Of a stretch of 64,000 nt of DNA, positions 1-37,000 are shown one piece after another (position 1 is the stretch's first letter; every line of letters begins with the position of its first letter). The notes under the pieces are model-generated. The model saw nothing but the letters and a program-made list of their open reading frames with translations, did not search any database and was not told the DNA's origin. The translations under genes and the position numbers were made by a program. The stretch comes from Rebecca billardiae RCC1528. Lineage: Eukaryota > Protista > Haptophyta. The stretch lies in NCBI GenBank assembly GCA_965240325.2, contig OZ251245.1:1054001-1118000 (forward strand). Reading direction: 5' to 3'.

Positions 1-81
1 TCCAACCAAAAAAAACGACGCGAGCAGCTTTGTAGCTGGCAACAGCACTAACGCACTTCATCGGGCGTCGGGCGGGCGCGA

Positions 82-2628
82 ATGGCACACGTCGCGCCCA
101 ACCGGTTCGGCGCTGCGCCGGCTGCGCCACCGAGGCATGCCGGGAGAGAGCGCGCGAGCATCATTGACCGGCGTGGCTCCGAGGCGCGTGCCGCGACGAT
201 CAACTCGTTGCGCGGCGGCCCGGCGCCGACCGCTGCGAACAGCGGCTGGGGCGAGGGCAAGCGCGGCCAGTTTGCGCGGAGCGGCTCGCACGGCAGCCTG
301 CTCGCGAGCTACAAAAAGACAAAGATTCGCACGAAGGCGACCGTGCTGCGCGGTGGCACGCAGAAGCGCATTGCCATGCGCCGGCGCACGCTCAACCCCG
401 CCGCGTCGTCGCTGCTCTCCTCGCGCGGCCGGCTGCGCGACTTTGGGTTTGTGGCGGGCGGCGCCAAGGACGCGGACAGCGTCCTCGCCGAGCCGCTGGC
501 GCCGAACGAGGCGCTGATCGACCACCTGGTCGCGGAGTACGAGGAGGAGCAGCGCACGCGCGAGGGCATGCGCCGCTGCTCTCTCTTCGCCGACTCGCCC
601 GTGCGCCGGCTGTGGGAGCGCTCTCTCTTCTACCTGCTGGTGGTTGTGTACCTCGTGCGGCCGATCGACATTGCGTACAACCGCCACCTGGGGCCGGAGG
701 TGGCGTGGACGATCTCGCCGACGTTCGACGTGGTGCTCACGGTGACGTACGTCGTCGACGTCGCGATGCAGCTCCTCACCGTCATCGAGGACGACGGCGA
801 CGGCCGGCTCGTCTACTCGCTCAAAGGGATCGCGTCGCGATACGCGCGGCGCGGCACGCTCGTGACCGACGTGCTGTCGTGCGTGCCGTACGCGCTGGTG
901 GCGACGCTGTCGGACACGACGTTCGGCATCGTCTTCTTCTCGATGCTCTTCAAGGTGCCGCGCTTCATCCGCATGCTGTACGCGCGCGTGCACCTGCTCG
1001 TCGAGCACCAGGCGGAGATGCGGCTGCTGAACGTGATCGTGCTCTTCTTGTTATTCGCGCACTGGATCTCGTGCATCTGGTACGCGGCGGGCTCGGTGCG
1101 GTACCAGGAGGCGTGGGAGGAGGAGGAGACGTGGGTGTACACGCACAACCTGCAGGACCGCCCGCTGTACAGCAGGTACATCCGCTCGCTCTACTACACC
1201 ATCGCCACGATGACTTCGCTACCATTCTCGACCATACAGCCGGTGAGTGCGCCGCGCGCCGAGCGCCGCGTGCCGCGCGGCCGCGCGCCGAGCCGAGCCG
1301 CACGCCCCGCGCGCCCGCGCCTCCCGCCGCAGCGCACCGACCTGGAGCACACGATGACGGTGTGCATGCAGATGATTGGCAACGCGCTCACCGCGTACCT
1401 CTTCGGCTCCGTGATCGCGTACATCAAGAAGCTCGACGAGCGCGCCGACCTGACCGAGCGGCGGATGAGCTCGCTCCGTCTGTACGGCCAGGTGCACAAC
1501 GTGCCCGCGCCCGTGCGGCAGACGCTGTACGACTACAGCCAGGCCATCCTCGACACGGGGCTGAACGAGCGGCACGTGCTCGAGCAGACGCTCGACCTGA
1601 TGCCGCCCGGCGTGCGCGCCGACGTTGTCCTCAAGATGCGCCGCCACCTCGTCGAGGCGGTGCCGATGTTTGCGAGCACCTCGTCCGGCTTTGTGCGCGA
1701 GGTCGTGCAGAAGCTCAAGCCGGTGCTCTGTCTCTCGGGCTCCGCCGTGTACCGCTCCCTCGAGCGCGCGGAGGAGATGTTCTTCATCCAGTGGGGCGCC
1801 GTCGTGCTGCTCTCGAGGAACGAGCGGCGCGTGTACGTCACGCTCGAGTCCGGCTCCTTCTTCGGCGAGCTGGCGATGGTGAGCACGTGCCGCCGGACGA
1901 ACACAGCCAAGGCCATCTCGGACTGCCACCTGTTCGCGCTGCACAACCAGCGCTTCGCGCAGATCATGCGCGCGTACCCGTCCGACTTCGACGCGGTGCT
2001 GCGCGGCGCGCGGCTCGAGCTGGCGAACATCATCTCGTCGCAGTTCGAGACGGACGAGGAGGTGCGCCGGGAGCTCACGCGCGCCGCGGACGCATTCGAG
2101 CAAATGTCGCAGCACGCGTCGCCGCGCGCGCCGAGCCGGTTCGAGACGAGCCCGGCCGCGCCCGCGGCCGCCGCCGGCGCCAAGCCGCCCGCCATCGTCT
2201 GCACGCGCGAGGACTCGGACCAGTCGAGCGCACCCGGCAGCTTCGCCACCGACAGGCGACGCGGCCACGGGCCCGCGCACGAGCCCGCGGCGCACGACGG
2301 CGCGTCGCCGAGCAGCGAGGCAGACACGCACTCGCCGCCGCCCATGCCGCCCGCCGGCCGGCGCCCGTCGGGCGGCAGTGGCGGCACCATACGCTTCAGC
2401 GCCGACACGATGCACCGCGCGGCGGCGGCGCAGCTCGACGACGGCGCGCGCTCGTTCGCGCGCGACCTCGCCTCCGTGCCGGAGCGAAGGCTCTCCGAGC
2501 TGAGGGAGGATGGCGGCGCCGCGGACGACGGCTCGCACATGGGCGGCGACCTGCCCGCGCCGGAAGGTCTCTCGGGCGGCGACGACTTTGCAGACGACTC
2601 GGCGGTCGTCTCCACCATCAGCGGCTGA
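82..2628 (+). CDS. Cyclic nucleotide-binding-domain (KCNH/HCN/CNG-superfamily) 6-TM ion channel; one predicted intron 1243-1332
   Basis: TM segments (FDVVLTVTYVVDV, DVLSCVPY, AHWISCIWY), pore helix YIRSLYYTIATMTS, C-linker, and CNBD with FFGELAM...RRT. A GTGAGT...CCGCAG 90-nt in-frame intron accounts for the Arg/Pro/Ala-rich insert after the pore. Confidence 0.9.
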   Translation: MAHVAPNRFGAAPAAPPRHAGRERASIIDRRGSEARAATINSLRGGPAPTAANSGWGEGKRGQFARSGSHGSLLASYKKTKIRTKATVLRGGTQKRIAMRRRTLNPAASSLLSSRGRLRDFGFVAGGAKDADSVLAEPLAPNEALIDHLVAEYEEEQRTREGMRRCSLFADSPVRRLWERSLFYLLVVVYLVRPIDIAYNRHLGPEVAWTISPTFDVVLTVTYVVDVAMQLLTVIEDDGDGRLVYSLKGIASRYARRGTLVTDVLSCVPYALVATLSDTTFGIVFFSMLFKVPRFIRMLYARVHLLVEHQAEMRLLNVIVLFLLFAHWISCIWYAAGSVRYQEAWEEEETWVYTHNLQDRPLYSRYIRSLYYTIATMTSLPFSTIQPVSAPRAERRVPRGRAPSRAARPARPRLPPQRTDLEHTMTVCMQMIGNALTAYLFGSVIAYIKKLDERADLTERRMSSLRLYGQVHNVPAPVRQTLYDYSQAILDTGLNERHVLEQTLDLMPPGVRADVVLKMRRHLVEAVPMFASTSSGFVREVVQKLKPVLCLSGSAVYRSLERAEEMFFIQWGAVVLLSRNERRVYVTLESGSFFGELAMVSTCRRTNTAKAISDCHLFALHNQRFAQIMRAYPSDFDAVLRGARLELANIISSQFETDEEVRRELTRAADAFEQMSQHASPRAPSRFETSPAAPAAAAGAKPPAIVCTREDSDQSSAPGSFATDRRRGHGPAHEPAAHDGASPSSEADTHSPPPMPPAGRRPSGGSGGTIRFSADTMHRAAAAQLDDGARSFARDLASVPERRLSELREDGGAADDGSHMGGDLPAPEGLSGGDDFADDSAVVSTISG

Positions 2629-20240: not shown

Positions 20241-20478
20241 CTGCCGCGTGGAGCGGTGCGTGCGGACCACCAAAAGTGGGGCGCCTGACGGCGGATGGCG
20301 GACTTTCCTGGCAATTGCACATTGGCCAACCGAAAGGTCCGGCCGCCGCGCCGGACCGTGCCGGTCCGGCTGGGCGCCAATGATCCGGACCGCGCATCCT
20401 CTTGAACCTGCGCCCTCGACTCGAAAAAACGCTCGCGGCCTCGCGCGTCCGACGCCCGGTCTTGTCCACTCCGCCCAG

Positions 20479-22548
20479 ATGGACGAGCCCGCGCGCAAGC
20501 TCATGCGCGAGCCCGTCGAGGACGTGGCGCTCCGGATCCTCCGCGCGTGCGCCTGGCGCGAGCGCACCCACCTGCTCTGCCTCAACCGCGCGTGGGCCGC
20601 CCTGCAGCGCAGCGCGGTGCGCGACTGGTGCCTCGAGCTCGAGGAGCGTTCGATGCTGTACGTGCCGGGGCCGCCGCCGGGGCGCCAGCGCACGCCGGCG
20701 GAGTGGCGCGAGCTGCTGCGCCAGCTGCGCGCGAGCGAGCATGTCTGGAACCCCCAGCCGCCCGCCGCCGGCGAGGCCGCGCCCGCGCGCAAGGTTCGGA
20801 TGCGCGTGTGCGCGCGCTTCCGCCCGCGCAAGCGCGGCGACGCCGCCGCCGCCGCTGATCAGAAGGCGGCGGAGGAGGCGTCGGCGGAGGCGCCGGGCAG
20901 CACGCAGCGCGTGGTGCTCCCGCTGCACCAGCGCCTCCAGCTCATCCGCGCCTCGAACAAGTGCTCCGCCTCCGAGGCGCAGCGGCTGCTCTGGGCGGGC
21001 GGCGCGGCGGGCAACGACCCGTTCTCGGCTCCAAAGGGAATGGCGGAGCTGGCGCTGTCCGACGTGACCAACGTGGAGCCCGCGGGCGCGCACGGCCCGG
21101 CCGGCCCCGCGCACAAGAAGCCCGCGCCCGCGCCCGCCGCCGACGGCTGCGCCGACGCGGCGGCCGCGCACGCCGCCGCGGCCAGCAGCACGAGCGCAGG
21201 CGTCGTGGCGCTCACCGACTCGTCCGTCGTGTTCTGCGCGCCCACGATCGGGCTGCGCGAGTTCTGCTACACGGCGGCGCTGGGCCCCGCGGCGCCGCAG
21301 CCCGCCGTGTACGAGGCCACCGTGCGCCAGCTCGTCGTCGACCTGCTCAACGGCAGCTCGGGCTGCCTGCTCGCGTTCGGGCAGACAGGCTCGGGCAAGA
21401 CCTTCTCAGTGTCGGGCGCGGACGAGGCGGCGGCGACGAGCGTCAGGTGCGGCGGCGCGGGGCTTGGGGAGCGCGCCGGGCTGGTGCCGCGCGCGCTGCG
21501 CGAGCTGCTCTCCGCGCTCTCCGCGCGCCGCGCGTCCCTCGGCATCCACTCCACCCTCCGCCTCTCGGCGGTGGAGGTCTTCGGGGACAACGTGCTCGAC
21601 CTTCTCAAGGAGGGCGAGGCGCTGGGCGCGTGGAGGGGCGTCGCGGCGCGCGCGCTCGCGAGCGGGCACGCGGACATGCCGGTGGGCTCTGCGGAGGAGG
21701 CGAGCGCGCTGCTGCTCCGCGCCGAGCGCACCAAGCGCCGCGCCGCCACGGCAATGAACGAGCACTCGTCGCGCGCGCACACGGTGCTCACGCTCACGCT
21801 CGCGCAGACGTCGGCTGACGGGCTCGAGCTCACGTCGACCCTCTGCCTCGCCGACCTCGGCGGCTCGGAGCAGCTCAAGCGCTCGGGCGCGACGGGCGAG
21901 CGGCTGCGCGAGGCGGTCAATATTAACCTCGGCCTGCTCGCGCTCAAGAGCTGCGTCACCGCGCTCACGGAGGGCCGCAGGTGCGAGCGCGCGCGCGCGC
22001 GTGCGCGCTGCGCGCGCACTCGCATGCGCGCAGGGCGCAGGCGCGCGCCGCGCGCCGCACCCCTCACTGAGACGCGCGGCGCCGCCCCGCCCGCCACGCC
22101 GTGCGCCCGCAGCCACGTGCCCTTCCACAACTCGGCGCTGACGCAGCTGCTGCGCCCGGCGCTCTCAGGCGCCGCGCAGGCGGTCGTCCTCGTGTGCGCG
22201 TCGCCCGACCCGGTCGACGCGAGCGAGACGCTCGAGGCGCTGCGCTTCGGCGAGCTGGCCGCGGTGGTGGAGGGCGAGGCGCGGCGGCACAGCCCTGCCG
22301 CGCTAATGGCGGAGACGCTGCGCGCGCTCGACGCGCGGATCGACGCGGTGCAGGCGGCGGTCGTGGCGAAGGAGCGCTGGGAGCAGCGCGTCGAGACCGT
22401 GCGCGACGAGCGCGCCGAGGGCCTCGTCGACACGGGCGTGGAGCAGAAGAAGACCTTTCGGCTGGTCGGCGCGGAGGCGGAGCGCGCCGAGCTCGAGGAG
22501 CTGCTCGCGCGCCGGCGCGAGCTCGTCGGGGATGCGGGCGAGCCGTGA
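20479..22548 (+). CDS. Kinesin motor protein with N-terminal F-box-like motif; intron 21981-22112
   Basis: MRVCARFRP, AFGQTGSGKTFS (P-loop), NEHSSRAH (switch I), DLGGSE (switch II), HVPF.NSALTQLL, ETLEALRFG, and a C-terminal coiled coil. Confidence 0.92.
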   Translation: MDEPARKLMREPVEDVALRILRACAWRERTHLLCLNRAWAALQRSAVRDWCLELEERSMLYVPGPPPGRQRTPAEWRELLRQLRASEHVWNPQPPAAGEAAPARKVRMRVCARFRPRKRGDAAAAADQKAAEEASAEAPGSTQRVVLPLHQRLQLIRASNKCSASEAQRLLWAGGAAGNDPFSAPKGMAELALSDVTNVEPAGAHGPAGPAHKKPAPAPAADGCADAAAAHAAAASSTSAGVVALTDSSVVFCAPTIGLREFCYTAALGPAAPQPAVYEATVRQLVVDLLNGSSGCLLAFGQTGSGKTFSVSGADEAAATSVRCGGAGLGERAGLVPRALRELLSALSARRASLGIHSTLRLSAVEVFGDNVLDLLKEGEALGAWRGVAARALASGHADMPVGSAEEASALLLRAERTKRRAATAMNEHSSRAHTVLTLTLAQTSADGLELTSTLCLADLGGSEQLKRSGATGERLREAVNINLGLLALKSCVTALTEGRRCERARARARCARTRMRAGRRRAPRAAPLTETRGAAPPATPCARSHVPFHNSALTQLLRPALSGAAQAVVLVCASPDPVDASETLEALRFGELAAVVEGEARRHSPAALMAETLRALDARIDAVQAAVVAKERWEQRVETVRDERAEGLVDTGVEQKKTFRLVGAEAERAELEELLARRRELVGDAGEP

Positions 22549-23015
22549 GCGGTGAGGCGGCCGCCCTCGCCCTCCGAGGGGCCGAGGGGCTTCTGCACGG
22601 CGCCTGCGCGGGCTGACGTGGGGTGGGGGGATGGCGGGCGGGCGGGGCGCGGCGCACGGGGCATGGGCCACCATGGGGTCGGTTGAGGTGCGCAACCGCA
22701 AAGTATCACGGTGCTGAATCAGACTTGAGTCGGTACAGTTATTACTTGCACTCATGCACTGTACAGCAAAATACCGCAAGGGGTACCGTTGACGGAGCTT
22801 GATACAGAAACAAGTCGTAGAATGTCGTGCAGATTGAACGAGAAGCGGAAGAAAGTCCGCAGCTGTGATTCCCTCTGTGCGCGCATCTATCAACCGCAAC
22901 CCGAAGACCTCCACTTCATCTCGCGGTGGAGAGGACGTCGTCTGGGACGTGATCTTGTCGCGAATCACCCAGCAAGAGTTCACGGCCGTCGCTGGCGCGT
23001 CACTGGCGGCGGGGC

Positions 23016-26000
23016 ATGATGGCCCGCATGCCCGCGCTGCGGGTGGCGAAGCGCTCGGTGCACCCCCAGCCGACGCCCGTACGCCCCTCGCGCTTCTCCT
23101 CCGTCGGCACCACCGCGGACGTGCGCTGGTACGGCGAGTTTGCGCGCGCCGACCTCGAGGAGCGGTACATCCGCGAGGAGGTGGCGCCAATCCTACCCAG
23201 GCGGTGCACGGCGATGGCGCTGGTGTTCTGCATCCTCATGATCGTGTACATCCCGATCGAGCTGGCCACCTCGGTGCACGCCAACATCGAGAGCCGCGTC
23301 TTCATGTCGGTCGCGTGCGTCTTCTGGGCGGTGCTGCTGCTGGCCGCGCGCGCCGCCGCGCGCGGGCGCTTGGCGATCTGGAAGCTCGAGTGGCTCTTCG
23401 CCGTGCTGTATGGGTGCATCTCGAGTGGCACGCTCCTCGGCTACGGCGGCCTGCTCGGCTGGCTCGACGCCGAGCGGGGCACGCTCGCCACGGTGCTGAT
23501 CGGCGACTTTTGGAACAACTTCCTGCAGCAGCAGTGCGTGCTCATGCTGATCGTGATCGTCACGCCGCTGCGCGCGCGCGTGTTCGCGCTGATGCTCGGC
23601 CCGTTCGTGTGCGCGGTGCTCGTCACGCGCGTCCACGCCGCGCTCAGCTGCGAGGCGCGCGCCGACTGCCCCGAGGGCGAGTCCCACTGGATCGGCACGG
23701 CCATCACCTCGCTCGAGGTGGTCCTCTTCTCCGCGCTCACGCTCACCGTCTGCGGCACGCTCAACGCGACGAGGCGGCACGCGCACGACTTCTACCGGAG
23801 CGTCGAGGCGGCGGCGGCGGAGCGCGCCGCGCGGGTCGAGCAGAGCACCGAGGTCGAGCGCGAGAGGGCGCTCGCCGCCGCCGAGCGCGAGAAGGCGGAC
23901 GCCGCCTCGCAGGCGCGCTCGCGGCTCATCCGCGTCGTCATGCACGACCTGCGCAGCCCGCTGCTCTCGGTGGTGAGCTCGGTGGACAAGCTGAAGCGCT
24001 CGGCGCCTCGCGCCGTCGGGGCGGAGTCGGAGGGCGTGCAGCAGGCCTTGACGACGCTCACGACGTGCTCCCGGATGATGGAGGACATCGTGCGCGCGCG
24101 CGCCCCTGCGGCGCCCCGCCTGCTGCTGCCGCGCTCTGTCCCGCGCTGTCGTGCGCGCGCGCGCGTCGGGCTGACCTCCGCGCGTGCTCCCGCGGGCACG
24201 CGCGCGCACGCCCCGCCCGCGCACCTTCCAACCCCCCCACGCCGCGTGCGCGCACAGATCCAGGACATGCTCGACTTCGAGCGGATCTCGAGCGGCCGTC
24301 TCAAGATTGTGCGCGAGTCGTTCATGCTCGCGCAGCTCGTCGACCGAGCGCGCGAGGCGTTCAGCGCGCTGGCGGAGGCGAAGGGCGTGCGGCTGAGCTC
24401 GCACGTGGAGCTGCCGCTGCTCGAGCGCGTGCTCGTGGGCGACGCGCGCCGGCTGCAGCAGTGCGTCAACAAGCTCTGCTCCAACGCGCTCAAGTTCACA
24501 GAGCGCGGCGGCACAGTGAAGATTCTCGCGTCCGCCCAAGCGGGCGGCGGGGACGGTGCGTCTAACGCGGACTCGTGCGCGAGCAACGGCAGTGGGCACT
24601 CCTCGCTGGGCTGCGCCGTGCAAGGGCCCCCGTCCGGCAACGGCCGCTACTCCGCGTCGTCCCACCCGCACTACGCCCCTTCCACCGCGTTGCCCACCGC
24701 CTCGTCCTCGCTGGTGCGCGTGAGCCTGCGCGTCGTGGACAGCGGCGTCGGGCTGAGCGCCGAGCAGATTGCTGCGCTGCACGGCGCGGAGCTCTTCACG
24801 CAGGTGGGGCAGGGGCAGCTGCAGGTGCGCGCAGCGGCGGCGTGCGCCTTGCCAGCGCGCTCCCTGCCGCGCGCCCCACTGGCGGGTGCGGGCCCTGGGG
24901 GTCGAGCGGCGCGCATGGCCACGCCGGCGCAGCCCGACCACGCGCGAGCGCGCCGCCGCCGCGCGCCCGTCGCGACCGCTCACCCGCCCGCCGCCGCCCG
25001 CCCGCTGCGTCCGCCCTGCGCCTCAGGGCTCCGGCGGCTCGGGTCTGGGGCTGATCATCACGCGGCAGCTGCTGCAGCTGCACGACGGCTCCGAGCTGCG
25101 GCTGCACTCCGACGGGCCCAACCGCGGCACCACCGCGGAGCTCGCGCTCAACCTGCGCCAGCCCGAAGCGTCCAGCTCGCCGCTGCGCCGCCGCCGCTTC
25201 CTCGAGGACGCGTCCGCTCGGAGGCGGCAGCTGTCCGGGGTGCTCACGCAGCTGCCGCCGGACTTTGCGCTGGTGCTGGTGGACGACGACGAGTCGCTGC
25301 GCCAGAGCCTGCCGCCGCGCCTCTTCGGCCCGCTCCCCTTCGAGACGTGCGCAGGCGGCGACGAGCTGCTGGCGCGCCTCGTCGACAGGCAGCGCGCCGC
25401 GCCCGCGCTGATCGTGATCGATTCGTACATGCCGCGGCTCTCGGGCGCGCAGAGCGTGCGGCTGCTGAGGGAGGCGGGGTTCACGGGGAAGGTGATCGGC
25501 CTCTCGACCGACCCGCCCGAGAGCCCCGAGCGGCTCGAGCTCGAGGCCGCGGGGTGCAACGCCGTGATGACCAAGGACGCGCGCGGGCTCGAGGCCGTCG
25601 CCGCGCTCGTGCACGCGTTCACTCTCGACCTGGTGTACGCCAACTGGGGCGTGCTGGGCCCGGACGGCGCGGGCGCGGTGGGCGAGATGTGCGTGCAGTC
25701 GCTCCGCACGTCCGTCGACTCGCTCTACCTCGGCACCAAGCCCGCGGCCCGGGCGCCCGAGGCTCAGCGCCAGCACACGCCGCCGCCCCGGCCGCCACGC
25801 GCGTCGCTGCCGCCGCCGGCCGCGGGCGCGCCCGCCGCCTCCGCGGGCGCTGCCACGCACGGCTCGGCCGCCGAGCACTCCGTGCCAGCGCCCGCGGCAC
25901 CCGTCGGCGCCGCCGCCGCGGCGGAGGCCGAGGGCGCGCGCTGCCTGTACGCGGAGGATGACCCGTTCCTGCAGCTGGCGATGGCGGACCAGCTGTTCGG

Positions 26001-26580
26001 CGCGATCGGCGCGCCGTACGACCTGGCGGAGAACGGCGCGGAGGCGCTCGAGCGCGTGCGGAGCGCGGCCGCGCCGTACGACGTGATCGTGCTGGACAAC
26101 CAGATGCCCAAGCTCACGGGGCAGCAGGTGGTCGAGCAGCTGCGCGCGGCGGGCTGCCAGGCGGCCATCATCGGGCTGACCGGCGACCCCAAGGGCTCGG
26201 ACGACCGCGAGGCGTTCGAGGCGGCGGGTCTCGACCTGTGCGCGGACAAGTCGAGCGCTGGCGTCGCGCAGATCACCAGCTTCATCCGCACCGTGCTCGC
26301 CGCACGCGCCGCTCCGCGCGCCGGCCCTTTGGTATGCGCGGCGCGCGCGGCTGCCGACAAGCCACCGGCCGCGTCGCCACAGTCGAGCTCGAGCGAGACG
26401 CGGATCTATGTCGGCGACGAGCACGAGGAAGATGACGCCGATGAGGAGGCTGCTGGTCGTGGGCCCGATGCCGTGCGGCGTCTGAAGCCTGCCGGCTCGA
26501 CAACGCGTGTGCCCACGACACCGACGCACGCACGAGTCGTCGGCGCGCGCCTCGACTGGGGCCCGGTTGACGATGTCTGA
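23016..26580 (+). CDS. Membrane-bound hybrid histidine kinase with two receiver domains; introns 24090-24257 and 24825-25026
   Basis: Multi-TM N-terminus; H-box MHDLRSPL; N-box SNALKFT; G1 DSGVG; G2 GSGLGL; REC1 VDDD...IDSYMP; REC2 AEDD...LDNQMP. Confidence 0.92.
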
Positions 26581-26728
26581 CTAGACTGTCTGAGCGAGCC
26601 TGACGCGGCGTCTGCGTGACAGTAGAGCCGCCACCGGTGATGAGTGACATTCCAATAGAGCTCGTCAATTCGACTACAATTTCAGCGACGAAAATCGTCA
26701 TTGCTTCGGCCATCGGGGACGCACCAGG

Positions 26729-29044
26729 ATGGCGGCCGCCTCGGCCGGCCGTGAAGAAGAGGACACATTGACATTTGTCCTCTTCTGCTCGGGCGCGCTC
26801 GACGCGAAGACGCTTCGACCGGAGCTCGACAGCACGCAGTGGTGGGGCCGACGCGACGCCCTCGTCCGCTGCACCAGCGTCCTGTGGGAGGCCCCCGTAG
26901 TCCGGGAGGTCGTGCTGCTGCATGCAGACGACAACGCGCTGCTGCGCACGTGCGCGGCCGCGGCGGGCGCGATCCCCGCGCCGACGGAGCGGCGGCTCAT
27001 CAGCGCCTGGCGGGATGTGGCGGAGGGCACCAGCGTGCCCGGCGTGAGCTGCGAGCGCGGCGCGTGGCGAGCAGCTCGCCTCGCGGCGCCGGTCGACGCC
27101 AGCGGCGGCGCTGCTGCCAACGGCGGCGGTGACGGCGCCGAACCTTCGGGCGCCTCCGAGCTCGAGCAGCTGGACAAGCGCGAGATCCTGGCCTTCTTGC
27201 ACGCCAACTGCGACGCCGCCTTCCTCCGCGCGCACGCGCTCAACAGCCCGGCACCCGTCGTGCTGAGGCGGTGCAACAAGGCCGCGCTGTTGAGGGCACA
27301 CGCCGCGTGGCGCGCGGCGCAGGCGCCGAGTCGTGCGAGCGCGCGCGCCGAGCCGCGCGGCGCGGAGGGCAGCGCGCCGAGCGAGCTGCAGCTCACGCTC
27401 GAGCACGTGCTGCGCGCCGCCCGCCCGCCGCCCGGCGCGGAGCCCGGGCGCGCGTGCGTGCAGCGCTGCGCCGCCCTGCTGTTGCACGAGGACTACGAGT
27501 GTGAGCTGCCGTGCTTTGGGCGCACGGAGGCCCCGGAGCGACCGGCTGAGCAGCTGCGGGGCGGCGGTGGCGGCGGCGGCGGTTCAGGCGTGCCTGGTCG
27601 CGCGGGGCGCGCGGGGCATACGGGCCGGAAGCGAGTGCGAGACGCCGACGGCGGCGCAGCGGCGGCCCCTGCGCAGCCGCACGCCGATGATGGCGCCGGC
27701 CGCGCGCGCGCGCAGGGCGGGCTGCATCTGTTGGTGTGCCTCGGCGCCGTGCGAGACATGAGCGCCGCAGAGGAGGCGGCGGTCGCGCGCGCGTGCGCGC
27801 GCGTCGCCGTGCCGTGCGCCGCGGCCAACCTCGGCCGCACGGCCGAGTTCACGAGTAAGATCATGGCGGCGATGGCGGCGCACGCGACGGCGGGCGTGCT
27901 GGGCCCGGCGGTGCGCGCGCTGCTCAGGAGCGCGGCCGGCGGCGGGCTCGGCGCGCGCCCACCCAACAAGCTGCCGCCCAGGCCGCCGCTGCCGCCGCCG
28001 GCCACCGCGGCGCCCGCGCCGCAGCCGCCGCAGCCGCCCGCGCGAATCCATCTGCTCGCTGGCGTCCGCTTCGGCAGCGCCGAGCTCAGCGAGGACCCGG
28101 GCGCCCGAGAGCGGATGCTGCCGCTGCTTCGCCTGGTCGTGAACGCGCTGTGGCGCTCACGGCTCGGCGCCGCCGCCGAGCCGGAGCCGTGCGCGGCCGG
28201 CGCTGAGGCGGAGGGCGTGGCCGCGGCGCGGGCTCAGCAGGGGCCTGCCGCGCGGGCGCCCACAGGCACGGGCTCGCCCTGCCTGCCCGAGATGGCGCTC
28301 ACGCTCTGCTTCGCCGACGGTGCCGTTCTCTCCCTCCGTCAGGCTGAGCTCGTGCGCGCGCTTGCGCACGCACACCAGGCCGCGCCGTCGGAGTGGCAGC
28401 TGCTGCGCGCGCTGTGCGCGCAGCGCGACGAGGCGGCCGCGTCCGGCGGCGGCGGCGGCGGCGCGGCGCAGGGGAAGGGGAAGCGCGCGCGCGCGCTGGC
28501 GGGCGCGCTCGCGGCGGCGCGGCTGCACGCGAGCAGCGCGCCGCTGGTGCTCGAGCTCAGCGCCGACGCCGACGCGCCCGCGCTCGCGCCGCGCGCGTAC
28601 CAGCAGCCGTGCGCGTGCGAGCGGCGCGGCGCGTCCGCACACCACGGCGCGGCCACCGTGTCGTCCGGACGTGCACAGCAGGCGCACGCCGACGTGGCGA
28701 CCGCGTTCGAGCTCATCGTGCGCTGCCCGGAGGTGGGGCAGGCCCCCTCGGCCGGCGCGCCCGCGCGGCAGGCGCTCTCAGACCGCAGGTGGGAGGATGC
28801 CTTGCGCGTCGCACTGCCTGCCGCTGTGCCGCGCGCACGAGCCTGCCTCTGGCGGCGCGGCCCCGCGCAGCACTCTCGGCAGCAGCAGCACACGCCGCCG
28901 CCCCCCTCGCCCTCCGCCGCCCTGTGCGCGGCTGTGCTGCAGCACTTCCAGTACCACGGCAGGCTCGAGGCGCCAGTGCGGGCGCTCTGCCGGCGAGCCA
29001 CACGGGCCGCTGCGGCGGTGGCAGACGGCGGCAGGACTTCGTGA
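26729..29044 (+). CDS. Putative SPOUT methyltransferase, TrmY-like, with a duplicated domain
   Basis: GRRDALVRC, PTERRL, PGVS, LLHED, VCLGAVRDMSAAEE and ANLG occur in the same order as the TrmY motifs (GRLD.LCRC, PDER, PGV, LHEDG, FVLGDH.G...EE, ISLG). The second half repeats LRLVVNALW.S...LTLCFADG...APSE. Confidence 0.6.
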   Translation: MAAASAGREEEDTLTFVLFCSGALDAKTLRPELDSTQWWGRRDALVRCTSVLWEAPVVREVVLLHADDNALLRTCAAAAGAIPAPTERRLISAWRDVAEGTSVPGVSCERGAWRAARLAAPVDASGGAAANGGGDGAEPSGASELEQLDKREILAFLHANCDAAFLRAHALNSPAPVVLRRCNKAALLRAHAAWRAAQAPSRASARAEPRGAEGSAPSELQLTLEHVLRAARPPPGAEPGRACVQRCAALLLHEDYECELPCFGRTEAPERPAEQLRGGGGGGGGSGVPGRAGRAGHTGRKRVRDADGGAAAAPAQPHADDGAGRARAQGGLHLLVCLGAVRDMSAAEEAAVARACARVAVPCAAANLGRTAEFTSKIMAAMAAHATAGVLGPAVRALLRSAAGGGLGARPPNKLPPRPPLPPPATAAPAPQPPQPPARIHLLAGVRFGSAELSEDPGARERMLPLLRLVVNALWRSRLGAAAEPEPCAAGAEAEGVAAARAQQGPAARAPTGTGSPCLPEMALTLCFADGAVLSLRQAELVRALAHAHQAAPSEWQLLRALCAQRDEAAASGGGGGGAAQGKGKRARALAGALAAARLHASSAPLVLELSADADAPALAPRAYQQPCACERRGASAHHGAATVSSGRAQQAHADVATAFELIVRCPEVGQAPSAGAPARQALSDRRWEDALRVALPAAVPRARACLWRRGPAQHSRQQQHTPPPPSPSAALCAAVLQHFQYHGRLEAPVRALCRRATRAAAAVADGGRTS

Positions 29045-29157
29045 TTGATGGGCGTGCCGCACTACCATGCTCCGCGTCAGGCGCGCGCATACCGTTGGCG
29101 TTCGGTCTGCGCGGTCGAGCGCGTAGTTGTCAGCGGCGCGCGGCCCGACGCCACTAA

Positions 29158-31565
29158 TGGCCCGCGGTGCAGGGCGGAGCGCGTAGCGTGGAGCCCCGCC
29201 GGGGGCCCTCACTACGTTGTCAAAAAGATCTTATTTGATCAAAGAAAAGGGGATGGGGAACGATTTTGAGGGCTGTTGGAGGGCCGGCGGTGAGTTTTCG
29301 ATTTTTCGAGGGGTACGTTGGCCCATAGTGCTCTGCATTAGCAACTACGCGCTTGACGAAATAAGCGCGCCCACGCCATTCCGCATAAGTCGATGGACGG
29401 ACGTGGGATCAGATACCCCGGGGGTGAAACAAGTGAGTATTTTTGTCCTTCTTGTATGCTGGAGTACGAGTTTGCCGAGCGACGTTTGATTGTTTTGGGT
29501 CGAAAACAGCTATGAGGCCAGATTCTTTTGAATAGCGCTTGCGAAAAGAAGTTACCCGCCTGTCTCGATGGATGAACCGCCTCATGGTATTGAAGAGATT
29601 CTTTTGAATAGCGCTTTTAAACCAAGTTACCCACCTGTCTCGTTGGATGAACCTCCTCATCATATTGAAGAGATTCTTTTGAATAGCGCTATTTAAAGCC
29701 AGTTACCCGCTTGCCTCGATGGATGAACCGCCTTGATAATATTGAAAGATATTCTTTTGAATAGCGCTTGTCACAACCAAGTTACCCGCCTGTCAGCTGT
29801 CTCGTGCTCGCGAGCGGCGCGACGACATCGGCCCGAGCGAGGATGCCGCCGCTTCAAAGGCGCGCACCGAGTGCGTGCGCGACGGGTGCCGGCCGGCCGC
29901 TGGTCTCGACCTATCGCCCTCGGCCCTCCCCGAGCGCGCCTGCAGGTACCTCCGGACGCGCATTCGGCTTGCTCACTACTCGATCAGCTCACTACTCACA
30001 GCTGCCGGTCACGCAGCCGCGCGGCGGCCCCGCGACCACTCGGACCAGGTCCGCGGCCCAAAGTGACAAGTGTGTGTGCGCGCCGCGCCGGTGCCCTCGC
30101 GCCGGTGGCGTGGGCTGGCTGGCCGCTGGTCTCGCCCACGCGCCCCACTCGCCCCAAGCGCGCAACGCCTGCGGGAAGCGCCGGCACCATACCTACCTAA
30201 CTAACCTGCGCGTCGACGCCCGTCCCGCCGCGGCCCGCGCCTCGATCGATCGTCGATCGGACCGCGTGCGTGCGACTCCGTCCGCGCCCGCGCGCAGGGT
30301 GGGAGGGGCTGATGCAGGAGCAGATGCAGGACTACCTCGAAATTGCACGCGACGAGGAGGTGCCCAGCGCGCACTTTACGCTGCGCGCATCACTCGAGTG
30401 GTCGCCCAGCGAGCGCGGCAGCTGGCCACCGGGCCGGCTGACGGCGGGCGCAGCTGCCAGCTGCGGACGCGCAGCGGGCGCGGAGTGGAAGCCGGCGCAG
30501 CGGCCGGGCAGCGGCGGCCGGCGCGGCAGCACGCTCGTATACATCGCGGCAGCTACCGGCCGCCGTCGTGCGGGGAAAGCACACGCTCTCCGCGGCGGCT
30601 TCCAAGATGCCGACGGGCCACGGCGTGCACTCCCGACTCCGTGCAGGCTGCGTGCGCGCTGCAGTGGCTGTGTCGAGCTGCTGCGGCGTGTGCTCGAGGC
30701 GCGGCGCTCGCACGGGCTACGCGGGCGCAGCGGGTGCGCGCAGCTGGCGCACGCAGCATGCCACGTCCTGCGGCGCCAGTTTGACGGCCGTCCGCCCCCC
30801 CGAGCTCGAGTTCTGCGCGCTTTGCGACGGCGCGGCCGGCAGCGCCCATCTGCCTGCTTGCTTGGGCACGCCAGCATGTCCGCCGCCGGGCCTGCTGCGC
30901 GCGCCGAAGCTGGAGGGCGGAGGAGGGCGCTGGGCTGCTCCTACGGCGTGCTGCAGCCCGGGCAGGCTCTACCGCGGCGCGGCGAGGCCGTCGCGCCTGC
31001 TCGCCGCCGTCGAGTCGCCCGTGCTGCGTGACCCTCGGCCACACGTGCTCGCTCGGCGGCACCGCAGCAGGCGTCCCATACCAGTATACTCGAGCCGCTG
31101 TGCGCACCCAAGGCGCGAGCTGCTCGAGCGGGCCAGGTGGGCCCAGGGGGTGCGTGCAGCTGGCACACGCAGCCCCGGCCCGTGTCATGGGGTGTCGGTT
31201 TGACGGTCGCCAGCCCCTGTGGGCTCGAGCGCTGTGCGCTTCACCACGGAGGTGCTGGCAGCGCCCCGCGGCGCGCAACGGCGGGGCAGCATGGCCGCCG
31301 CCGGCGCCGCCGCACATGCCGCCGCTTACGGGCAGTCGAGAGCTTGGGGCAGCACCTACGGCGCATGCTGCAGCTCGGGGCGGGCTCTGCCAGCCTGCTG
31401 TGGCGTGATCGCGCATTTTCCAGACCGTCGACTCGCCCGCGCTGCATAATATTCCATTATTCGTTTGCCGCGCGTGCTCGACGGCGCTCCGCGCTGCTGC
31501 TGCCGCTACGGCCGCGCGTTGGACGGACAGCATATGCCGACGGAGTCAGGTGCACCGCGGGCCCC
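29158..31565. mobile_element. Possible non-autonomous TIR element (PIF/Harbinger-like signature)
   Basis: 13-bp perfect IR GGCCCGCGGTGCA (29159-29171 / 31551-31563), TAA just outside both ends, gene-free interior with a minisatellite and a diverged internal duplication. Confidence 0.35.
29521..29795. repeat. AT-rich minisatellite, ~76-bp unit, ~3.6 copies
   Basis: ATTCTTTTGAATAGCGCT...AGTTACCCGCCTGTCTCGATGGATGAACC... recurs at 29521, 29597, 29672 and ~29750. Confidence 0.92.
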
Positions 31566-32654
31566 TAACTACGTTGGTTCTACGGAAGGACCGCGGAACG
31601 CGGTCATATATATATATATATATATATATTTATTATGTATGTCCTTGACCTTGGGCCTCCTTGCGTACGCAACCAACAGCCTGGATGCGGCAGGCGCATA
31701 CTTACTTACATTATTAATAATAATGCAGACACTGCTCCTTGACGAGCACGTCGGGCACGAGGTGCAGCTTGAGAGCTGCGCCATCCGCCAGGCAGCTAGC
31801 CACACAGCTGATCGAACGGCCGCCAGCAGCTGGAGATTGGGTACCTCGCCACTTGAGGCAGCGGGTGCGCGAAAGGTCGCCGCTAGATCGAATCCGACCG
31901 CGGTCGGATGACTTTGACAAGCCTTCATTCGTTATTCGCCGGCTTCACCGTCTAATAGCAGGAAGATGCGAAGAAGTCGGCCAGCCATTTGTACTCAAAA
32001 TCCGAGGGCCCCGCCAATGTATGATCAACGACTGGCTGCAGCAGGAGAGTAGATGAAACTGATGAAAGCCAAGCAATCGATGAGCTGGAATATTGCTGGC
32101 GGAAGACCGCAGCAAGTTTGTAGTCATTGATGCATCGTAACAGCTTGTATGATGCTTGGTGGCGGCGGAGATGGAGAGCGCTCAGGGTGATTGCGCCGCC
32201 AGAGAGATGAATGATTTGTATCCGCCATGAAGCTGTACGCGAACAGGTAGTATGGCGCTTCAACCAGCAGAGGGCCAGCTCGGCTGGAGGCGCGGGGAAC
32301 CGCGAGGCAAGCGGCTGCAGCACGCGCGTCCGATGGTGCGTTGGCGTCGAAAACCGCCAACTGTTTCGCCCTGTACGACGCTAGCGGACAAAGTCGATAG
32401 GCTGGTAGTATATGGCCACGTACTTCTCGCCTGAGCGGACACAATCGATTATTGTGCCAAAAACACCACGATATATGTAACTGCAAGTGCGCGCTGCTAT
32501 GTTATATATATGTTATACGCACCACCAGAAAAGCGCAGACGAAATATGATGAACTTACACGCGCTGCGTGCGCCATCAGACGGCAGGCAGTACTGGTCGC
32601 GGCAGAGTATTCGTCGTACTGCTGGGTAAAGGACTTAGTAGATCATCTTCGTCG

Positions 32655-33722
32655 TCACTCGGCGGCGGCGCCTGCCGCGCAGCTGCTGCCGTGCGCCTGC
32701 TGAGACTTGTCACACGCCTTGGGCTTGCCACCGCTGACGCCATGCTCGTCGTGTCCGCGCCCCGCTGGCTCGTAGTGGTACGCGCGCCGGTCGGCGAGCC
32801 ACCAGCCCGCGGCGAGGCGCGGCGGCGCAAAGACCTTGGCGACGTACGCGAGGGCGCCGATGGTGGCCGCTTGGAAGACCAGCTCGGGCACGGCATACGC
32901 CATCCCACGCTCGAGCACCGCGGCTGCGGCGGCTGCGGCCAGCCACGTTGCGTGCTTGGGAGCGCCGCGGCGCACGCGCAGCTGGTGGGCGACGGCGGCG
33001 CAGACGAGCGTGTGTGCGGATGCGCGCGCGCCGCTGACGCTCGCGGCGGAGGAGAGCATCATTCCGATCGCGGGCATCAGCAGTGCGCACGCGTACACGA
33101 AGTGGTACGTCGCGGCGCGCGCCTTGCCCTTCCGGACGAGTGTCATCATCAGCGGCGCCAGCTGGATGGCGAGCAGAGGCGAAAACGCATGGTCGGGCGC
33201 GGCCGAGATGGCCATGGCGGTGGCGAGCAGCTGCGCGTACGCGTACGAGCGCTTGACGCACGCAATCTCGCCCGGTCGGCAGTGCGCGGGGTACGGCATC
33301 GCGTTCGTCGTGCGCTGCTCACGGTCGCCCCAGCGCGCGCTCACGGCTGAGGCCGCGAGCATGGCCGTGTGCACGGCGACGTGCTGAAGCGGACGGGCGA
33401 GCGCGGGCGGCAGGGCGACGGCGAGGGCGGCGGTGAGCACGTGGCGGAGCGAGAAGACGAGCGAGTGCAGCCGGAACTCGGGCCAGATCATCGGCGCGGT
33501 GTGGTTGCGCTTGCGCGGCAGCGGCAGCGGCAGCGAGAGCAGCGGCAGCGCCGCATGCACGCCAAGCGCCACGAGCTTGGACGGGAGCGGCTCGGACGAG
33601 AGGCGCCAGGCGGAGCCGAGGTAGAAGAGAAGCGCCCAGCGGAGCGCAAAGTTGGCGAGCGCCAGCGCGCCCAGCAGCGCGTGCGCGTGGAAGCGGTCGT
33701 GCTCGGAGAAAAGGCGCGCCAT
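32655..33722 (-). CDS. Multi-pass membrane protein of unknown function with His-containing motifs
   Basis: Several hydrophobic segments with motif-like islands HALLG, MIWPEFRLHS, MPYP, QLAPLMMTLVRKG and YHFVY. Confidence 0.75.
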   Translation of the reverse strand: MARLFSEHDRFHAHALLGALALANFALRWALLFYLGSAWRLSSEPLPSKLVALGVHAALPLLSLPLPLPRKRNHTAPMIWPEFRLHSLVFSLRHVLTAALAVALPPALARPLQHVAVHTAMLAASAVSARWGDREQRTTNAMPYPAHCRPGEIACVKRSYAYAQLLATAMAISAAPDHAFSPLLAIQLAPLMMTLVRKGKARAATYHFVYACALLMPAIGMMLSSAASVSGARASAHTLVCAAVAHQLRVRRGAPKHATWLAAAAAAAVLERGMAYAVPELVFQAATIGALAYVAKVFAPPRLAAGWWLADRRAYHYEPAGRGHDEHGVSGGKPKACDKSQQAHGSSCAAGAAAE

Positions 33723-34015
33723 CGTCGGGACGGCCGGGGCGTGTGGTCAGTGGACGGCCTCGTCCGCGCGGAATGGTACCCGCGCACCGCTGGAGGCAAC
33801 CGGTCCACTGGGGAAGGGCCCTTGCCACCAGCTTGAAGCTGCTCACCACTGGAGGGAAGTTTGCGCCGGAGCGCGCCCACCGCGGCACCGCAGTATTTTC
33901 TCGCGCGCACAATTCGTAGTCGCATGTTATTGCTGAATTCAAATAAGCGCATATCATTTTCCCGCGCAATTTCGTCGCGTCTCGAGCTCGTCATCAGTGA
34001 TTCTGATTCAGACTG

Positions 34016-37000
34016 CTAGCTTGGCTGTGGCGCGGCCGCGCCCGCCGCGCCAACCGCTGACGGAGCGCCCTCGCCCCCGCCGATCCCCAGCCGCTTCTCG
34101 ATGCGCCTGCGCAGGTCGATGGCGGGCTGCCTCACGCGCGAGCGCTGCGCCGTGAGCGGCAGCAGCGCGTCGTGCAGCCGAGCAAACTCGGCGTGGCAAG
34201 CGTCGCACCGCCGCAGCCTGCGCATGCGCGCGCGCGGGCGCGTTCGCATCAGCGGCAGGCCCGGCGTCGGGCGGGGTGGGCATCCGCGTGGTCGGCGTGG
34301 GCGCGGCGCTCGGCAAGGCGCCGCGGGCGTCACTCGGCCCGCGCCTCCGTGCGCACCACCGCGCGCACACCGCTCCTCTGCGCTCAGATCGACGCCGCCC
34401 GCCGCGGCCGCGTGGCCGCCGCCTGCCGCGGCCGCGCGCGTCTCAGCGATCAGCGGCCCAAAGTCCGCAAGCAGCTTGGTGCCTGCGGTGGTCGCCGCCT
34501 CCAGGTGCTCCTCGAAGGGCGACTGCGCGAGCACCGAGCGCAGCAGCGGCAGCACCGACGCCGCGTGCTCGAGCGACGCGCAGCTGCGCGCGCACCGCCG
34601 GCCGCGCGTCAAAAGGGCGGCGGCGCGTGGGCGGTGGCGTCAGGCGCGGGCCGCGCAGTGACGCGGGTTGTGTGTGTGGGCGTGTGGTGCGCGCGGCGGT
34701 GCGGCGGGCGTGTGCGCAGCCCGTCGGGGCCGCGGTGCCGTCTCCACCCCTCCGCATCCACACGTGCGCGCGCCCATCGCGCCACACGCGTCACGGCCGC
34801 AGCCGTCTCCGCCGGCTGCGGCCGCACACGCGCCGCCGAGCGGCGGCGTGCGCAAAGCGGCGGCGCACGCGCGCACACACCTGCGCAGGGCGCCTGAGCG
34901 AACGAAGTCAGCTGTCACCGCCGTGTCGCCGAGCTTGGCGAGGTGGGCGAGCGCGCCGCGCACGTCGCCTGCCGCCCAGAACGCGAGCACGGCTCGCACT
35001 GCGGTCAGCCGAGCGGAGAGCACGGCGAGCTGCACGCTCGAGGGCTCGACCATCTCCGAGATTGCAATCTCCTCCGCAGCGGCGTCGAGCTCGGCGCCGG
35101 CCGCGCCGCCGAGCGCGGCCGCGCCGCCGCCCGCCGCGTGCGGCAGGAACTGGGCGGGGTCCAGGCCGAGCGGGGCGGAGCGCTCAGCCGGGATGATGGC
35201 AGGGGCGGCCGCGTGCCCTTGGGGCGCGCCCGCGCCCGCGCCCGCGCCCACGCCCGCGCCCACGCCCGCGCCCGCGAGCCGAGCCACGCCGCCGTTCAGG
35301 TCCCGACCGCTGCCGCCGCCGCCGCCGCCGCTCGCGCCGCCCGCGCGCGGCTCGGTGTTCCGACCCCGGCGCGCGCGCTCGTCCGCGGCGCGGCGGGCCT
35401 CCGCGCCGCGCTTCTCGAGGGCGAGGGCCTTTGCGATGGCGGCGGCGTCCATGGCCGCGTCTCCGCGCAGGCTCTCGCCCGTCGACGTGCCGATCTCGCG
35501 GTGCTGGCCGGACTCTGAGAGGTCGACGCTGCCGCGCCCGCCGCCGCCGCCGCCATTGCCGCCGCCGCCATCGCCGCCACCGCCGCCGTCGCGACTGGCC
35601 CGGCGGCCAACAGACGGGCGGCGCGCGCCGCCTGCTGCCGCCGCCGGGGTGCCGTTCGCCCCGCGCGCGCCGCTCGCGCGCGCCGCGCCCCTGGCGCCGG
35701 CCCTGCCCGCGGCCGCGGCGTCGCCAGCGCCGTGCGCAGCTGCGCCCTCCTCCTCCTCCTCCTCCGCCGCGCCCTCCTCCTCCTCCGCCGACGCGACGGC
35801 GCTGAGCTCGAGCGCCGGGGAGGGCACACCCCACCCCGCGCGCATGCTCTGTGTCGGCAGCTGGCCGGCCGCGTCCGCCGCCGCCGCCGCCGCGAGCATC
35901 GCGGCGCCGGGCGAGGGCTCGCTCGTGCGGCGCGCGGCCGCGCCGCCGGGGCCGCCGCCGCTCGGCTGCCCGCGCCCTGCGATGACGAGGGCGCCGCCCC
36001 CCTTGGCGGCGGCGGTGGCGGCGGCGGCGCTGATGCCGCCACTTGCGCCGCCAGGCGACTGCGTGACGACAGCCGGCGGGCGCGCTGCCGCATTCGACAG
36101 TCGCCGAGGCTGCGCCGCCGGCGGCTGCCTCGGTGGCGCCGCCTCGGCCGCCGCGCCGCCGGCCGGCGTGCCCGCGCCGCCCGCCGCCGCGTCGCGCGCC
36201 GCCGCGCTCGCGCGCAGGTCGGTGGCGAACGGTGGCTTGACCGCGGCGGCGGGCGTGGCGCCCGCCGCCGCGCCGCGCGCGCGCCCGCCCGCCGCCGCAG
36301 CGTGCAGCTCGCGCGACGGCATGCCCGCCGCGGGCGTGAGCTCGTCAGCGGCGGCGGCGAGCGCGGCCGCCGCGCGCTCGCGCGTGGGCGTGCGCGCGCG
36401 GCTGCTGCCCGCGGAGCGCCGCCCGGCGGCGGGGTGCTGTGCGGACGGGCTGTGCAGCGGCGAGCGCGTGGGCGGCGAGGGCAGCGGCTGCGCGTGCGGC
36501 GGGCTGTGGAGCGGGCTGTGCAGCCCCCCGCCCGCCGGCTCGGCCGTCGCGCCCCCGTGCTGCACGCCAGCCACGCCGCCGCACCCGCCCCCGCCGCCGC
36601 TCAGCACCGCACCCGACGAGTGCGTCCGCCGCACCTCGCGCGCCCACGGCCGCACCATCGCCAGGTCGACGCCCCACACCGAGACGGCCGCGTCGCGCGC
36701 GGAGACGGCGAGGAGCTGCGACTGCTCCGGCAGCTCGCACACGTCCGCCAGCGCGCCGAACGCGCCGCGCGCCTCGACGTGGTCGAGCAGCCGCGCGGGC
36801 TCCCACCCGTGCACGCGCATCCCGTCGTCTGTCGCTGCGTACAGCGCACTGCCGTCCGCGCTGAAGGCGACCGCGCGCGGCGGGAACATGTCGGGCGGCG
36901 CGCTGTCGACGAGCTCGAAGGTCTCGAGGTCGTAGAAGCGGACGGAGCGGTCCCCGCCCACCGCCGCCATCAGGAACTCGCTCGGGTGGAACGCCAGGCT

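Follow-up and report, generated by a model that had tools for sequence, protein, structure and literature searches.

A eukaryotic protein with two TrmY-like SPOUT folds in one chain: a predicted single-chain pseudo-dimer from the haptophyte Rebecca billardiae

We analysed a 64,000-nt stretch of the genome of the haptophyte Rebecca billardiae RCC1528 (contig OZ251245.1, positions 1,054,001 to 1,118,000; hereafter the window), and in particular one open reading frame (ORF) at 26729-29044 on the forward strand. In the ORF list it runs from ATG to TGA as a single-exon coding sequence and encodes 771 residues. An earlier reading of the letters alone, made without database searches (the sequence-only reading), had proposed that it encodes a TrmY-like SPOUT protein built as a single-chain pseudo-dimer. 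The ORF is a genuine gene, because it has hundreds of homologues with invariant motifs over its full length. The G+C content is 0.74 over the ORF and 0.63-0.81 per 2 kb across the window, and because the window is so rich in G+C, long ORFs are present in all six frames. The identical 771-residue product is called on a public contig from run ERR14847148, and a 753-residue variant is called on a second public contig from run ERR14847151. A 54-nt in-frame indel, equal to 18 residues, is present in the first contig and missing in the second. It is flanked by a 9-nt direct repeat, lacks GT-AG ends and maps to a loop of low confidence ahead of the L-H-E strand. An intron was considered as the cause of the 18-residue difference from the sequence P0001, and was ruled out in favour of this repeat-flanked deletion.

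We built a whole-chain AlphaFold2 (AF2) model from a 125-sequence alignment (mean predicted local distance difference test score, pLDDT, 77.5; predicted template modelling score, pTM, 0.82). About 250 residues are disordered in total, including loops at residues 269-325 and 483-514. When model residues 7-390 were re-aligned to PDB structures with VIA-align, the N-terminal half (N-half) superposed best on solved TrmY/DUF358 structures, with Z scores of 16.6 for 2qmm_A of the TrmY family (178 of 195 residues aligned, 2.6 A), 16.1 for 3ai9 and 16.0 for 3aia (both Mj1640 TrmY) and 14.4 for 2qwv (TrmY/DUF358). The Nep1/Emg1 entries followed at 12.0-13.2, and then RsmE (7.2-8.8), Sfm1 (7.5) and TrmD (6-7). 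Foldseek also ranked TrmY/DUF358 and Nep1 entries first for the N-half; its E-values were weak (0.01-0.4) because the inserts split the domains, and VIA-align was needed for clear scores. These superpositions agree with the earlier description of the first half as TrmY-like, and place it closer to TrmY than to Nep1 or Sfm1, rather than grouping it with the eukaryotic Nep1, Trm10 or Sfm1.

The C-terminal half (C-half; residues 430-771) was folded separately from 114 sequences (pLDDT 81.2, pTM 0.81), and its model was aligned to all 48,161 PDB representative chains without the Foldseek prefilter. As for the N-half, TrmY came first (Z 12.1 for the TrmY-family chain 2qmm_B, 177 of 195 residues aligned; 11.8 for 2qwv_B) and Nep1 second (9.6 for human EMG1 and 8.8 for P. 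horikoshii Nep1), while the next best row was the RsmE-like 4l69 at 5.9 and the best non-SPOUT row stood at 5.1. A shape search of the ESM Atlas with the C-half returned only weak RsmE and SpoU rows (template modelling scores of 0.3-0.5). The second SPOUT domain that had been proposed for this half is thus recovered from its lone fold. Across both halves, Nep1 structures score 3-4 Z units under TrmY. According to these models, both halves are TrmY/Nep1-type SPOUT folds with TrmY the closest, and their near-full-length overlay on knotted TrmY chains (177-178 of 195 residues) suggests that both share the knotted TrmY topology. Because the whole-chain pTM is 0.82 despite the disordered residues, the interdomain arrangement is confidently predicted, and in it the two halves may pack like a SPOUT dimer.

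Comparison of the N-half and C-half profiles with hhalign shows that the two halves are homologous and derive from a tandem duplication. The last strand and helices align (N-half 350-398 with full-length 690-753, E 1.4e-5), and the ...NLGRTAEFTSKI..H..G.L segment of the N-half is paired with the ...LQH..Y..RL segment of the C-half. Colinear sub-domains match one another, N(8-120) with C(436-580) at P 3e-6 (probability 88%) and N(215-400) with C(598-771) at P 7.4e-4, compared to P-values of 0.5 and 0.033, and no match, in crossed sub-domain controls. The first of these matches joins the '..LLFD.D..PTE..I..WK' block to '..L.F.DG..AAPSE.QIL'. In the window protein, it pairs VVLLHADD..PAPTERR with LTLCFADG..AAPSEW, which is exactly the repetition of N-terminal motifs in the second half that the sequence-only reading had put forward. 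The chain therefore holds two SPOUT-fold domains of common origin, as do the known tandem SPOUT fusions.

The two halves are conserved very differently, as measured on columns from alignments of 108-125 homologues. All ten motifs quoted in the sequence-only reading are present in the order it gave, which is presumably the order of TrmY, and they fall on the family's most conserved columns, so they are no accidental strings of a G+C-rich ORF. The conserved columns of the N-half make up the loop that opens helix A, together with the three that follow the last three strands. They comprise W38, W39, R41, R42, D43, A44, L45 and R47 at the start of helix A and P85 and E87 at that of helix B; L252, H253, E254, E259, L260 and P261 of the first knot loop; L338, G339, A340, V341, R342, D343 and E348 of the second; and L368, G369, E373, F374, T375, S376, K377, I378 and H385 of the third. 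In SPOUT enzymes, the loops after the last three strands form the knot and hold the cofactor, S-adenosylmethionine (SAM). R41, R42, D43 and R47 are 96-97% conserved, and conservation reaches 100% at E87, H253, E254, G339, V341, D343, F374, S376 and K377, as well as at W475, S477, P553 and E555 of the C-half. The stretch R41-R42-D43-A44-L45 stands at the start of a helix (39-49) and is the positional counterpart of the R-P-D-I loop of Nep1, in which the invariant R88-P89-D90 'catalytic loop' opens alphaA (PMC3064781). From this secondary-structure position, R41-R42-D43 would be equivalent to R88-P89-D90.

In the C-half, only 20 columns are at least 80% conserved (R460, V471, L474, W475, R476, S477, L524, F528, A546, H549, A551, A552, P553, E555, Q557, L559, Y624, Q738, H739 and Y742). 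None of them falls within the three knot-loop regions, which are rich in indels. A low-confidence extended hhalign alignment places gaps in the C-half opposite the R-R-D stretch of the N-half but retains the following L-V-R, and in neither register does a conserved Asp follow a conserved Arg. Judged by its sequence, the C-half is a conserved fold with a conserved surface of its own, devoid of catalytic and cofactor signatures. The knot motifs of the second half had been called eroded, and the column counts bear this out; the accompanying proposal of one active and one structural domain fits the asymmetry.

The 'inserts' that had been seen in the first half resolve into two elements. One is a species-specific Gly/Arg-rich loop, missing from the homologues of other species in alignment A1. 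The other, absent from the earlier account, is a basic tilted helix bundle (BTHB). The corresponding Pfam model, PF18410, is matched by 94 of 108 family members (best 6e-12), while the window copy scores 0.011-0.025, under the gathering score. The family profile matches HECTD1 (2lc3) at E 9.7e-8 and FKBP3/FKBP25 at E 1.4e-6 and 2.3e-6, and the structures agree: model residues 116-198 superpose on the BTHB (N-domain) of FKBP25 with Z 7.8 (62 residues, 2.0 A) and the model superposes on that of HECTD1 with Z 7.1. Here the bundle lies inside a SPOUT domain, whereas in FKBP25 and HECTD1 it stands at the N-terminus or within the chain of a prolyl isomerase or an E3 ligase. In FKBP25 it binds double-stranded RNA and has been linked to ribosome biogenesis (PMC5714180). 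By analogy, the inserted bundle may bind RNA.

Table 1. Features of the gene at 26729-29044 and of its 771-residue product (nucleotide positions are those of the window)
Feature	Position	Strand	Residues	Basis or remark
N-terminal TrmY-like SPOUT domain, first part (beta1, helix A with R-R-D loop, beta2-3, helix B from P-T-E)	26747..27085	+	7-119	VIA-align range 7..390; pLDDT mostly >90
Motif GRRDALVRC			40-48	N-half
R41-R42-D43, candidate catalytic loop, start of helix A	26849..26857	+	41-43	conserved 96-97%
Motif PTERR			85-89	N-half
P85-T86-E87 motif, N-terminus of helix B	26981..26989	+	85-87	P 94%, E 100%; hhalign partner is A-P-S-E of the C-half
Motif PGV			104-106	N-half
BTHB insert in N-terminal SPOUT domain	27086..27334	+	~120-202	ordered helices 141-198; profile and structure
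N-terminal SPOUT domain, second (knot) part	27371..27937	+	215-403	columns 80-100% conserved; inside TrmY superpositions
In-frame indel polymorphism, 54 nt / 18 residues	27423..27476	+		present in ERR14847148 contig, missing in ERR14847151 contig
L-H-E loop motif	27482-27490	+		N-half knot part
Motif LHED			252-255	N-half
Species-specific disordered Gly/Arg-rich loop between L-H-E and G-A-V-R-D strands	27533..27703	+	269-325 (57)	pLDDT <50
L-G-A-V-R-D loop motif	27740-27757	+		N-half knot part
Motif LGAVRD...EE			338-348	N-half
L-G-R-T-A-E-F-T-S-K-I loop motif	27830-27862	+		N-half knot part
Motif NLG			367-369	N-half
Pro-rich interdomain linker	27938..28039	+	404-437	low to middling pLDDT, no regular secondary structure; variable in family
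C-terminal second TrmY-like SPOUT-fold domain, degenerate (no R-R-D loop, unconserved knot loops)	28040..29023	+	438-765	lone fold, structure search, hhalign, conservation
Motif LRLVVNALWRS			467-477	C-half
W-R-S-R conserved motif	28151-28162	+		C-half
Motif LTLCFADG			524-531	C-half
A-P-S-E conserved motif	28382-28393	+		C-half
Motif APSE			552-555	C-half
Motif CAAVLQH			733-739	C-half
Q-H-x-x-Y conserved motif	28940-28954	+		C-half

We determined the extent of the family by an exhaustive HMMER search with a profile built from nine relatives, which had come from a word-index search. It returned 511 homologue cluster representatives at E<=1e-3, 357 at 1e-10 and 229 at 1e-30. Every named member is eukaryotic and annotated as 'hypothetical' or 'uncharacterized': the oomycete Aphanomyces astaci (XP_009827337 / W4GW49), the chromerid Chromera velia (A0A0G4FGG9), the chrysophyte Chlorochromonas danica, the dinoflagellate Gymnodinium catenatum and the chytrid Chytriomyces sp. 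MP71 (KAI8621710). The remaining members come from metagenomes and unlabelled runs. Across 185,579 prokaryotic species genomes, no member carrying the patterns LGx[VT][AP]EFTSK and [QM]WWxRRDA[LI] was found. The distribution looks patchy, and the suggestion that the enzyme is algal does not hold, with oomycetes, a chytrid fungus, a dinoflagellate and Chromera among the members. Many orthologues (P0005, P0008; profile A4) end in long Lys-rich tails that weakly match the tail of RPA34, an RNA polymerase I subunit, which hints that they reside in the nucleus or nucleolus; the tail of the window protein is rich in Ala and Arg instead.

Sequence searches were far less informative about the fold. 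With the single protein, Pfam, NCBIfam and PDB returned a sub-threshold BTHB match at residues 145-190 and nothing else, and hmmsearch against PDB, run with profiles built from full-length members, N-halves and C-halves, found the BTHB only. The TrmY model of Pfam, PF04013, does not match the window protein at E<=10; it is weakly matched by 2 of 108 N-halves (best E 0.0034) and by none of 114 C-halves. The Nep1/Emg1 model, PF03587, has no match in the window protein or in either set of halves, and no Pfam family is matched consistently by the 114 C-halves. A word-index search with the N-half profile was dominated by low-complexity words, and yielded 19 known members and no functional name. By ESM language-model features, the whole protein and the lone C-half each rank PF04013 clusters first, with a score of 0.85, which we rate as a lead only.

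One cluster of the ESM Atlas holds 57 proteins of about 301 residues, 88% of them with PF04013, which are mostly eukaryotic and most commonly from haptophytes. It suggests that haptophytes also hold a separate, single-domain TrmY homologue. Because single-domain TrmY homologues exist in some eukaryotes, what is new here is the unannotated tandem, asymmetric, BTHB-bearing family, and not a TrmY-like fold in a eukaryote per se. In published accounts, TrmY is found only in archaea (PMC5372735), with a few bacterial members of its group, COG1901 (PMC1829167). Our full-text literature searches found no paper that ties TrmY or PF04013 to these eukaryotic groups, and none that describes the tandem family.

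The closest characterised system is TrmY (COG1901/DUF358/PF04013), the archaeal tRNA pseudouridine-54 N1-methyltransferase, which uses SAM and acts after Pus10. It is the best structural match of both halves over about 175-184 of about 200 residues in comparisons with 3ai9/3aia (Mj1640), 2qmm (A. fulgidus) and 2qwv (V. cholerae VCA1059). Its N-terminal Arg/Asp loop and its knot loops are conserved in the N-half. However, TrmY is a single domain of about 200 residues that forms a homodimer, while the window protein combines two copies, a BTHB insert and long loops in one 771-residue chain, has no PF04013 match at the Pfam threshold, and carries a second copy that lacks the catalytic and cofactor motifs. 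Nep1/Emg1 (COG1756/PF03587), the 18S rRNA pseudouridine N1-methyltransferase and assembly factor, is near-universal in eukaryotes and is the second-best structural match of both halves. By position it would share the R-x-D loop that opens helix A; its active site lies between two SPOUT units, and it recognises a hairpin loop. Unlike the window protein, Nep1 is a one-domain homodimer without a BTHB; its Z scores fall below those of TrmY, and PF03587 finds no match here. When Nep1 binds RNA, the flipped target base lies between the two monomers beside the cofactor, and the partner monomer makes most of the contacts to the RNA (PMC3064781). TrmY likewise acts as a dimer on a hairpin, the T-arm (reviews including PMC5372735).

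Tandem SPOUT duplications (PF00588-PF00588 SpoU-SpoU and Nep1-Nep1) have been predicted to form dimer-like single chains, in a survey of doubly knotted proteins that lists five architectures, three of them SPOUT and none TrmY-like (PMC11187310). The protein described here likewise has a duplicated SPOUT domain in one chain. The published fusions were found via Pfam annotation of both domains, whereas neither SPOUT domain here is seen by Pfam; compared to those fusions, the copies here are strongly diverged, with one degenerate and the other carrying an inserted, putatively RNA-binding domain. The protein is best seen as a distinct eukaryotic family in the TrmY/Nep1 branch of SPOUT enzymes, with a predicted single-chain pseudo-dimer architecture. 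It does not belong to the TrmY family sensu stricto: PF04013 does not match it, it departs from the plan of a single-domain homodimer, and it is eukaryotic.

With a probability of roughly 0.6, and leaning on the predicted models, we propose that the protein is a single-chain pseudo-dimeric SPOUT RNA methyltransferase of the TrmY/Nep1 lineage, with a catalytic N-half, a degenerate partner C-half, a BTHB that grips the RNA, and m1-pseudouridine chemistry. An ancestral TrmY-like domain would have been duplicated in tandem. The N-half is the likely catalytic copy, because it keeps the Arg-Arg-Asp loop and the three SAM-binding knot loops; the cofactor would sit in its knot, and R41, R42 and D43 would activate the target base. 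The C-half would most likely take the place of the partner subunit in a SPOUT homodimer and complete the inter-subunit RNA cleft of one active site, presenting as its partner face an invariant surface of R460, L-W-R-S-R, H-x-A-A-P-S-E-x-Q, Y624 and Q-H-x-x-Y. The BTHB would probably grip the double-stranded stem of an RNA hairpin, with the target base in the loop flipped into the cofactor site of the N-half. The most likely reaction would be the SAM-dependent methylation of pseudouridine to 1-methylpseudouridine in a structured RNA encoded in the nucleus, at position 54 of the tRNA T-loop or at an rRNA site. We infer this chemistry because TrmY and Nep1, the nearest characterised families, both methylate N1 of pseudouridine in a hairpin loop.

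Several points weigh against this proposal. Sequence-profile searches of Pfam, NCBIfam and PDB link the window protein to neither TrmY nor Nep1, and the assignment to that branch depends on predicted structures. The dimer-like packing has the whole-chain pTM of 0.82 as its single basis. No RNA-seq run is listed for the locus. Reviews (including PMC5372735) report no eukaryotic m1-pseudouridine outside 18S rRNA. Furthermore, Nep1/Emg1 is reported to have an essential role in assembly that is separate from methylation (PMC3045603); because the role of Nep1 is partly non-catalytic, such a fold is no guarantee that methylation is the main function. The last point would favour a protein of the same architecture whose main work is to bind RNA or to help assemble ribosomes without catalysis, as an RNA chaperone or scaffold, and in which methylation is absent or dispensable. 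The precedent is the second-closest structural relative, and the Lys-rich tails of the orthologues, with their weak RPA34-tail match, and the tie of the FKBP25 BTHB to ribosome biogenesis point the same way. We nevertheless consider it improbable, as no columns of the family are better conserved than the knot-loop motifs of the N-half (G339, D343, F374, S376, K377, H253 and E254 are invariant), which is what selection for cofactor binding should produce.

An active SPOUT methyltransferase with another chemistry, acting on N3 of uridine or pseudouridine (as RsmE and RlmH) or on the ribose 2'-O, is about as improbable. RsmE is the next SPOUT group after Nep1 for the N-half, and Tkaczuk et al. 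2007 linked COG1901 by HHsearch to both COG1756 (Nep1) and COG1385 (RsmE) (PMC1829167). Compared to RsmE, however, TrmY and Nep1, both N1-pseudouridine enzymes, score 4-8 Z units higher, and an R-x-D loop that opens helix A would be a Nep1-type arrangement. Less probable still is a homodimer of two-domain chains in which each half pairs with its counterpart from another chain; the TrmD-Tm1570 fusion is an example, and requires two chains for its dimers (PMC11187310). The confident interdomain placement implied by the whole-chain pTM argues for pairing within one chain, fusions of two like domains in the literature are predicted to yield dimer-like single chains (PMC11187310), and a degenerate C-half paired with itself would create a site without cofactor motifs. 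We see almost no chance that the ORF is a product of G+C-rich DNA, or a misread intron-containing region, that encodes no protein. The long ORFs in all six frames at 74% G+C and the missing RNA run would fit such an accident, but on sequence grounds it is already refuted by the conservation data, with hundreds of homologues sharing invariant motifs along the entire length. The AF2 folds are also confident, and the sole length variant is a repeat-bounded, in-frame 54-nt indel rather than an intron.

A more specific scenario, which we offer tentatively, extends the proposed single-chain methyltransferase to the family as a whole. Haptophytes, stramenopiles, alveolates and chytrids might possess a dedicated, Nep1-distinct m1-pseudouridine writer that acts at position 54 of the tRNA T-loop or at a lineage-specific rRNA site, built as an obligate single-chain heterodimer of one active and one RNA-presenting SPOUT domain with a BTHB stem clamp. 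If true, several large protist and fungal lineages would carry an unrecognised RNA methylation, an archaeal-type modification in eukaryotes, for which the literature knows m1-pseudouridine only as a Nep1 product in 18S rRNA. The protein would exemplify sub-functionalisation of a symmetric SPOUT homodimer into an asymmetric single chain, one half being catalytic and the other a degenerate partner. It would also be a sixth candidate architecture for doubly knotted proteins, one invisible to Pfam-based surveys. TrmY is already used as a pseudouridine-labelling tool (PMC13171889), and a mesophilic eukaryotic relative could serve likewise.

A tRNA search of window positions 20000-36000 found none. 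The upstream neighbour at 23016-26580 on the forward strand is a hybrid histidine kinase spread over two frames: HisKA and HATPase_c share the frame of 23016-24770, and two receiver stretches of response-regulator type are read in that of 24769-26580. The switch of frame near 24770-24800 points to an intron or a frameshift. Immediately after the gene, the stretch at 29200-29700 is richer in A+T and contains short ORFs on both strands.

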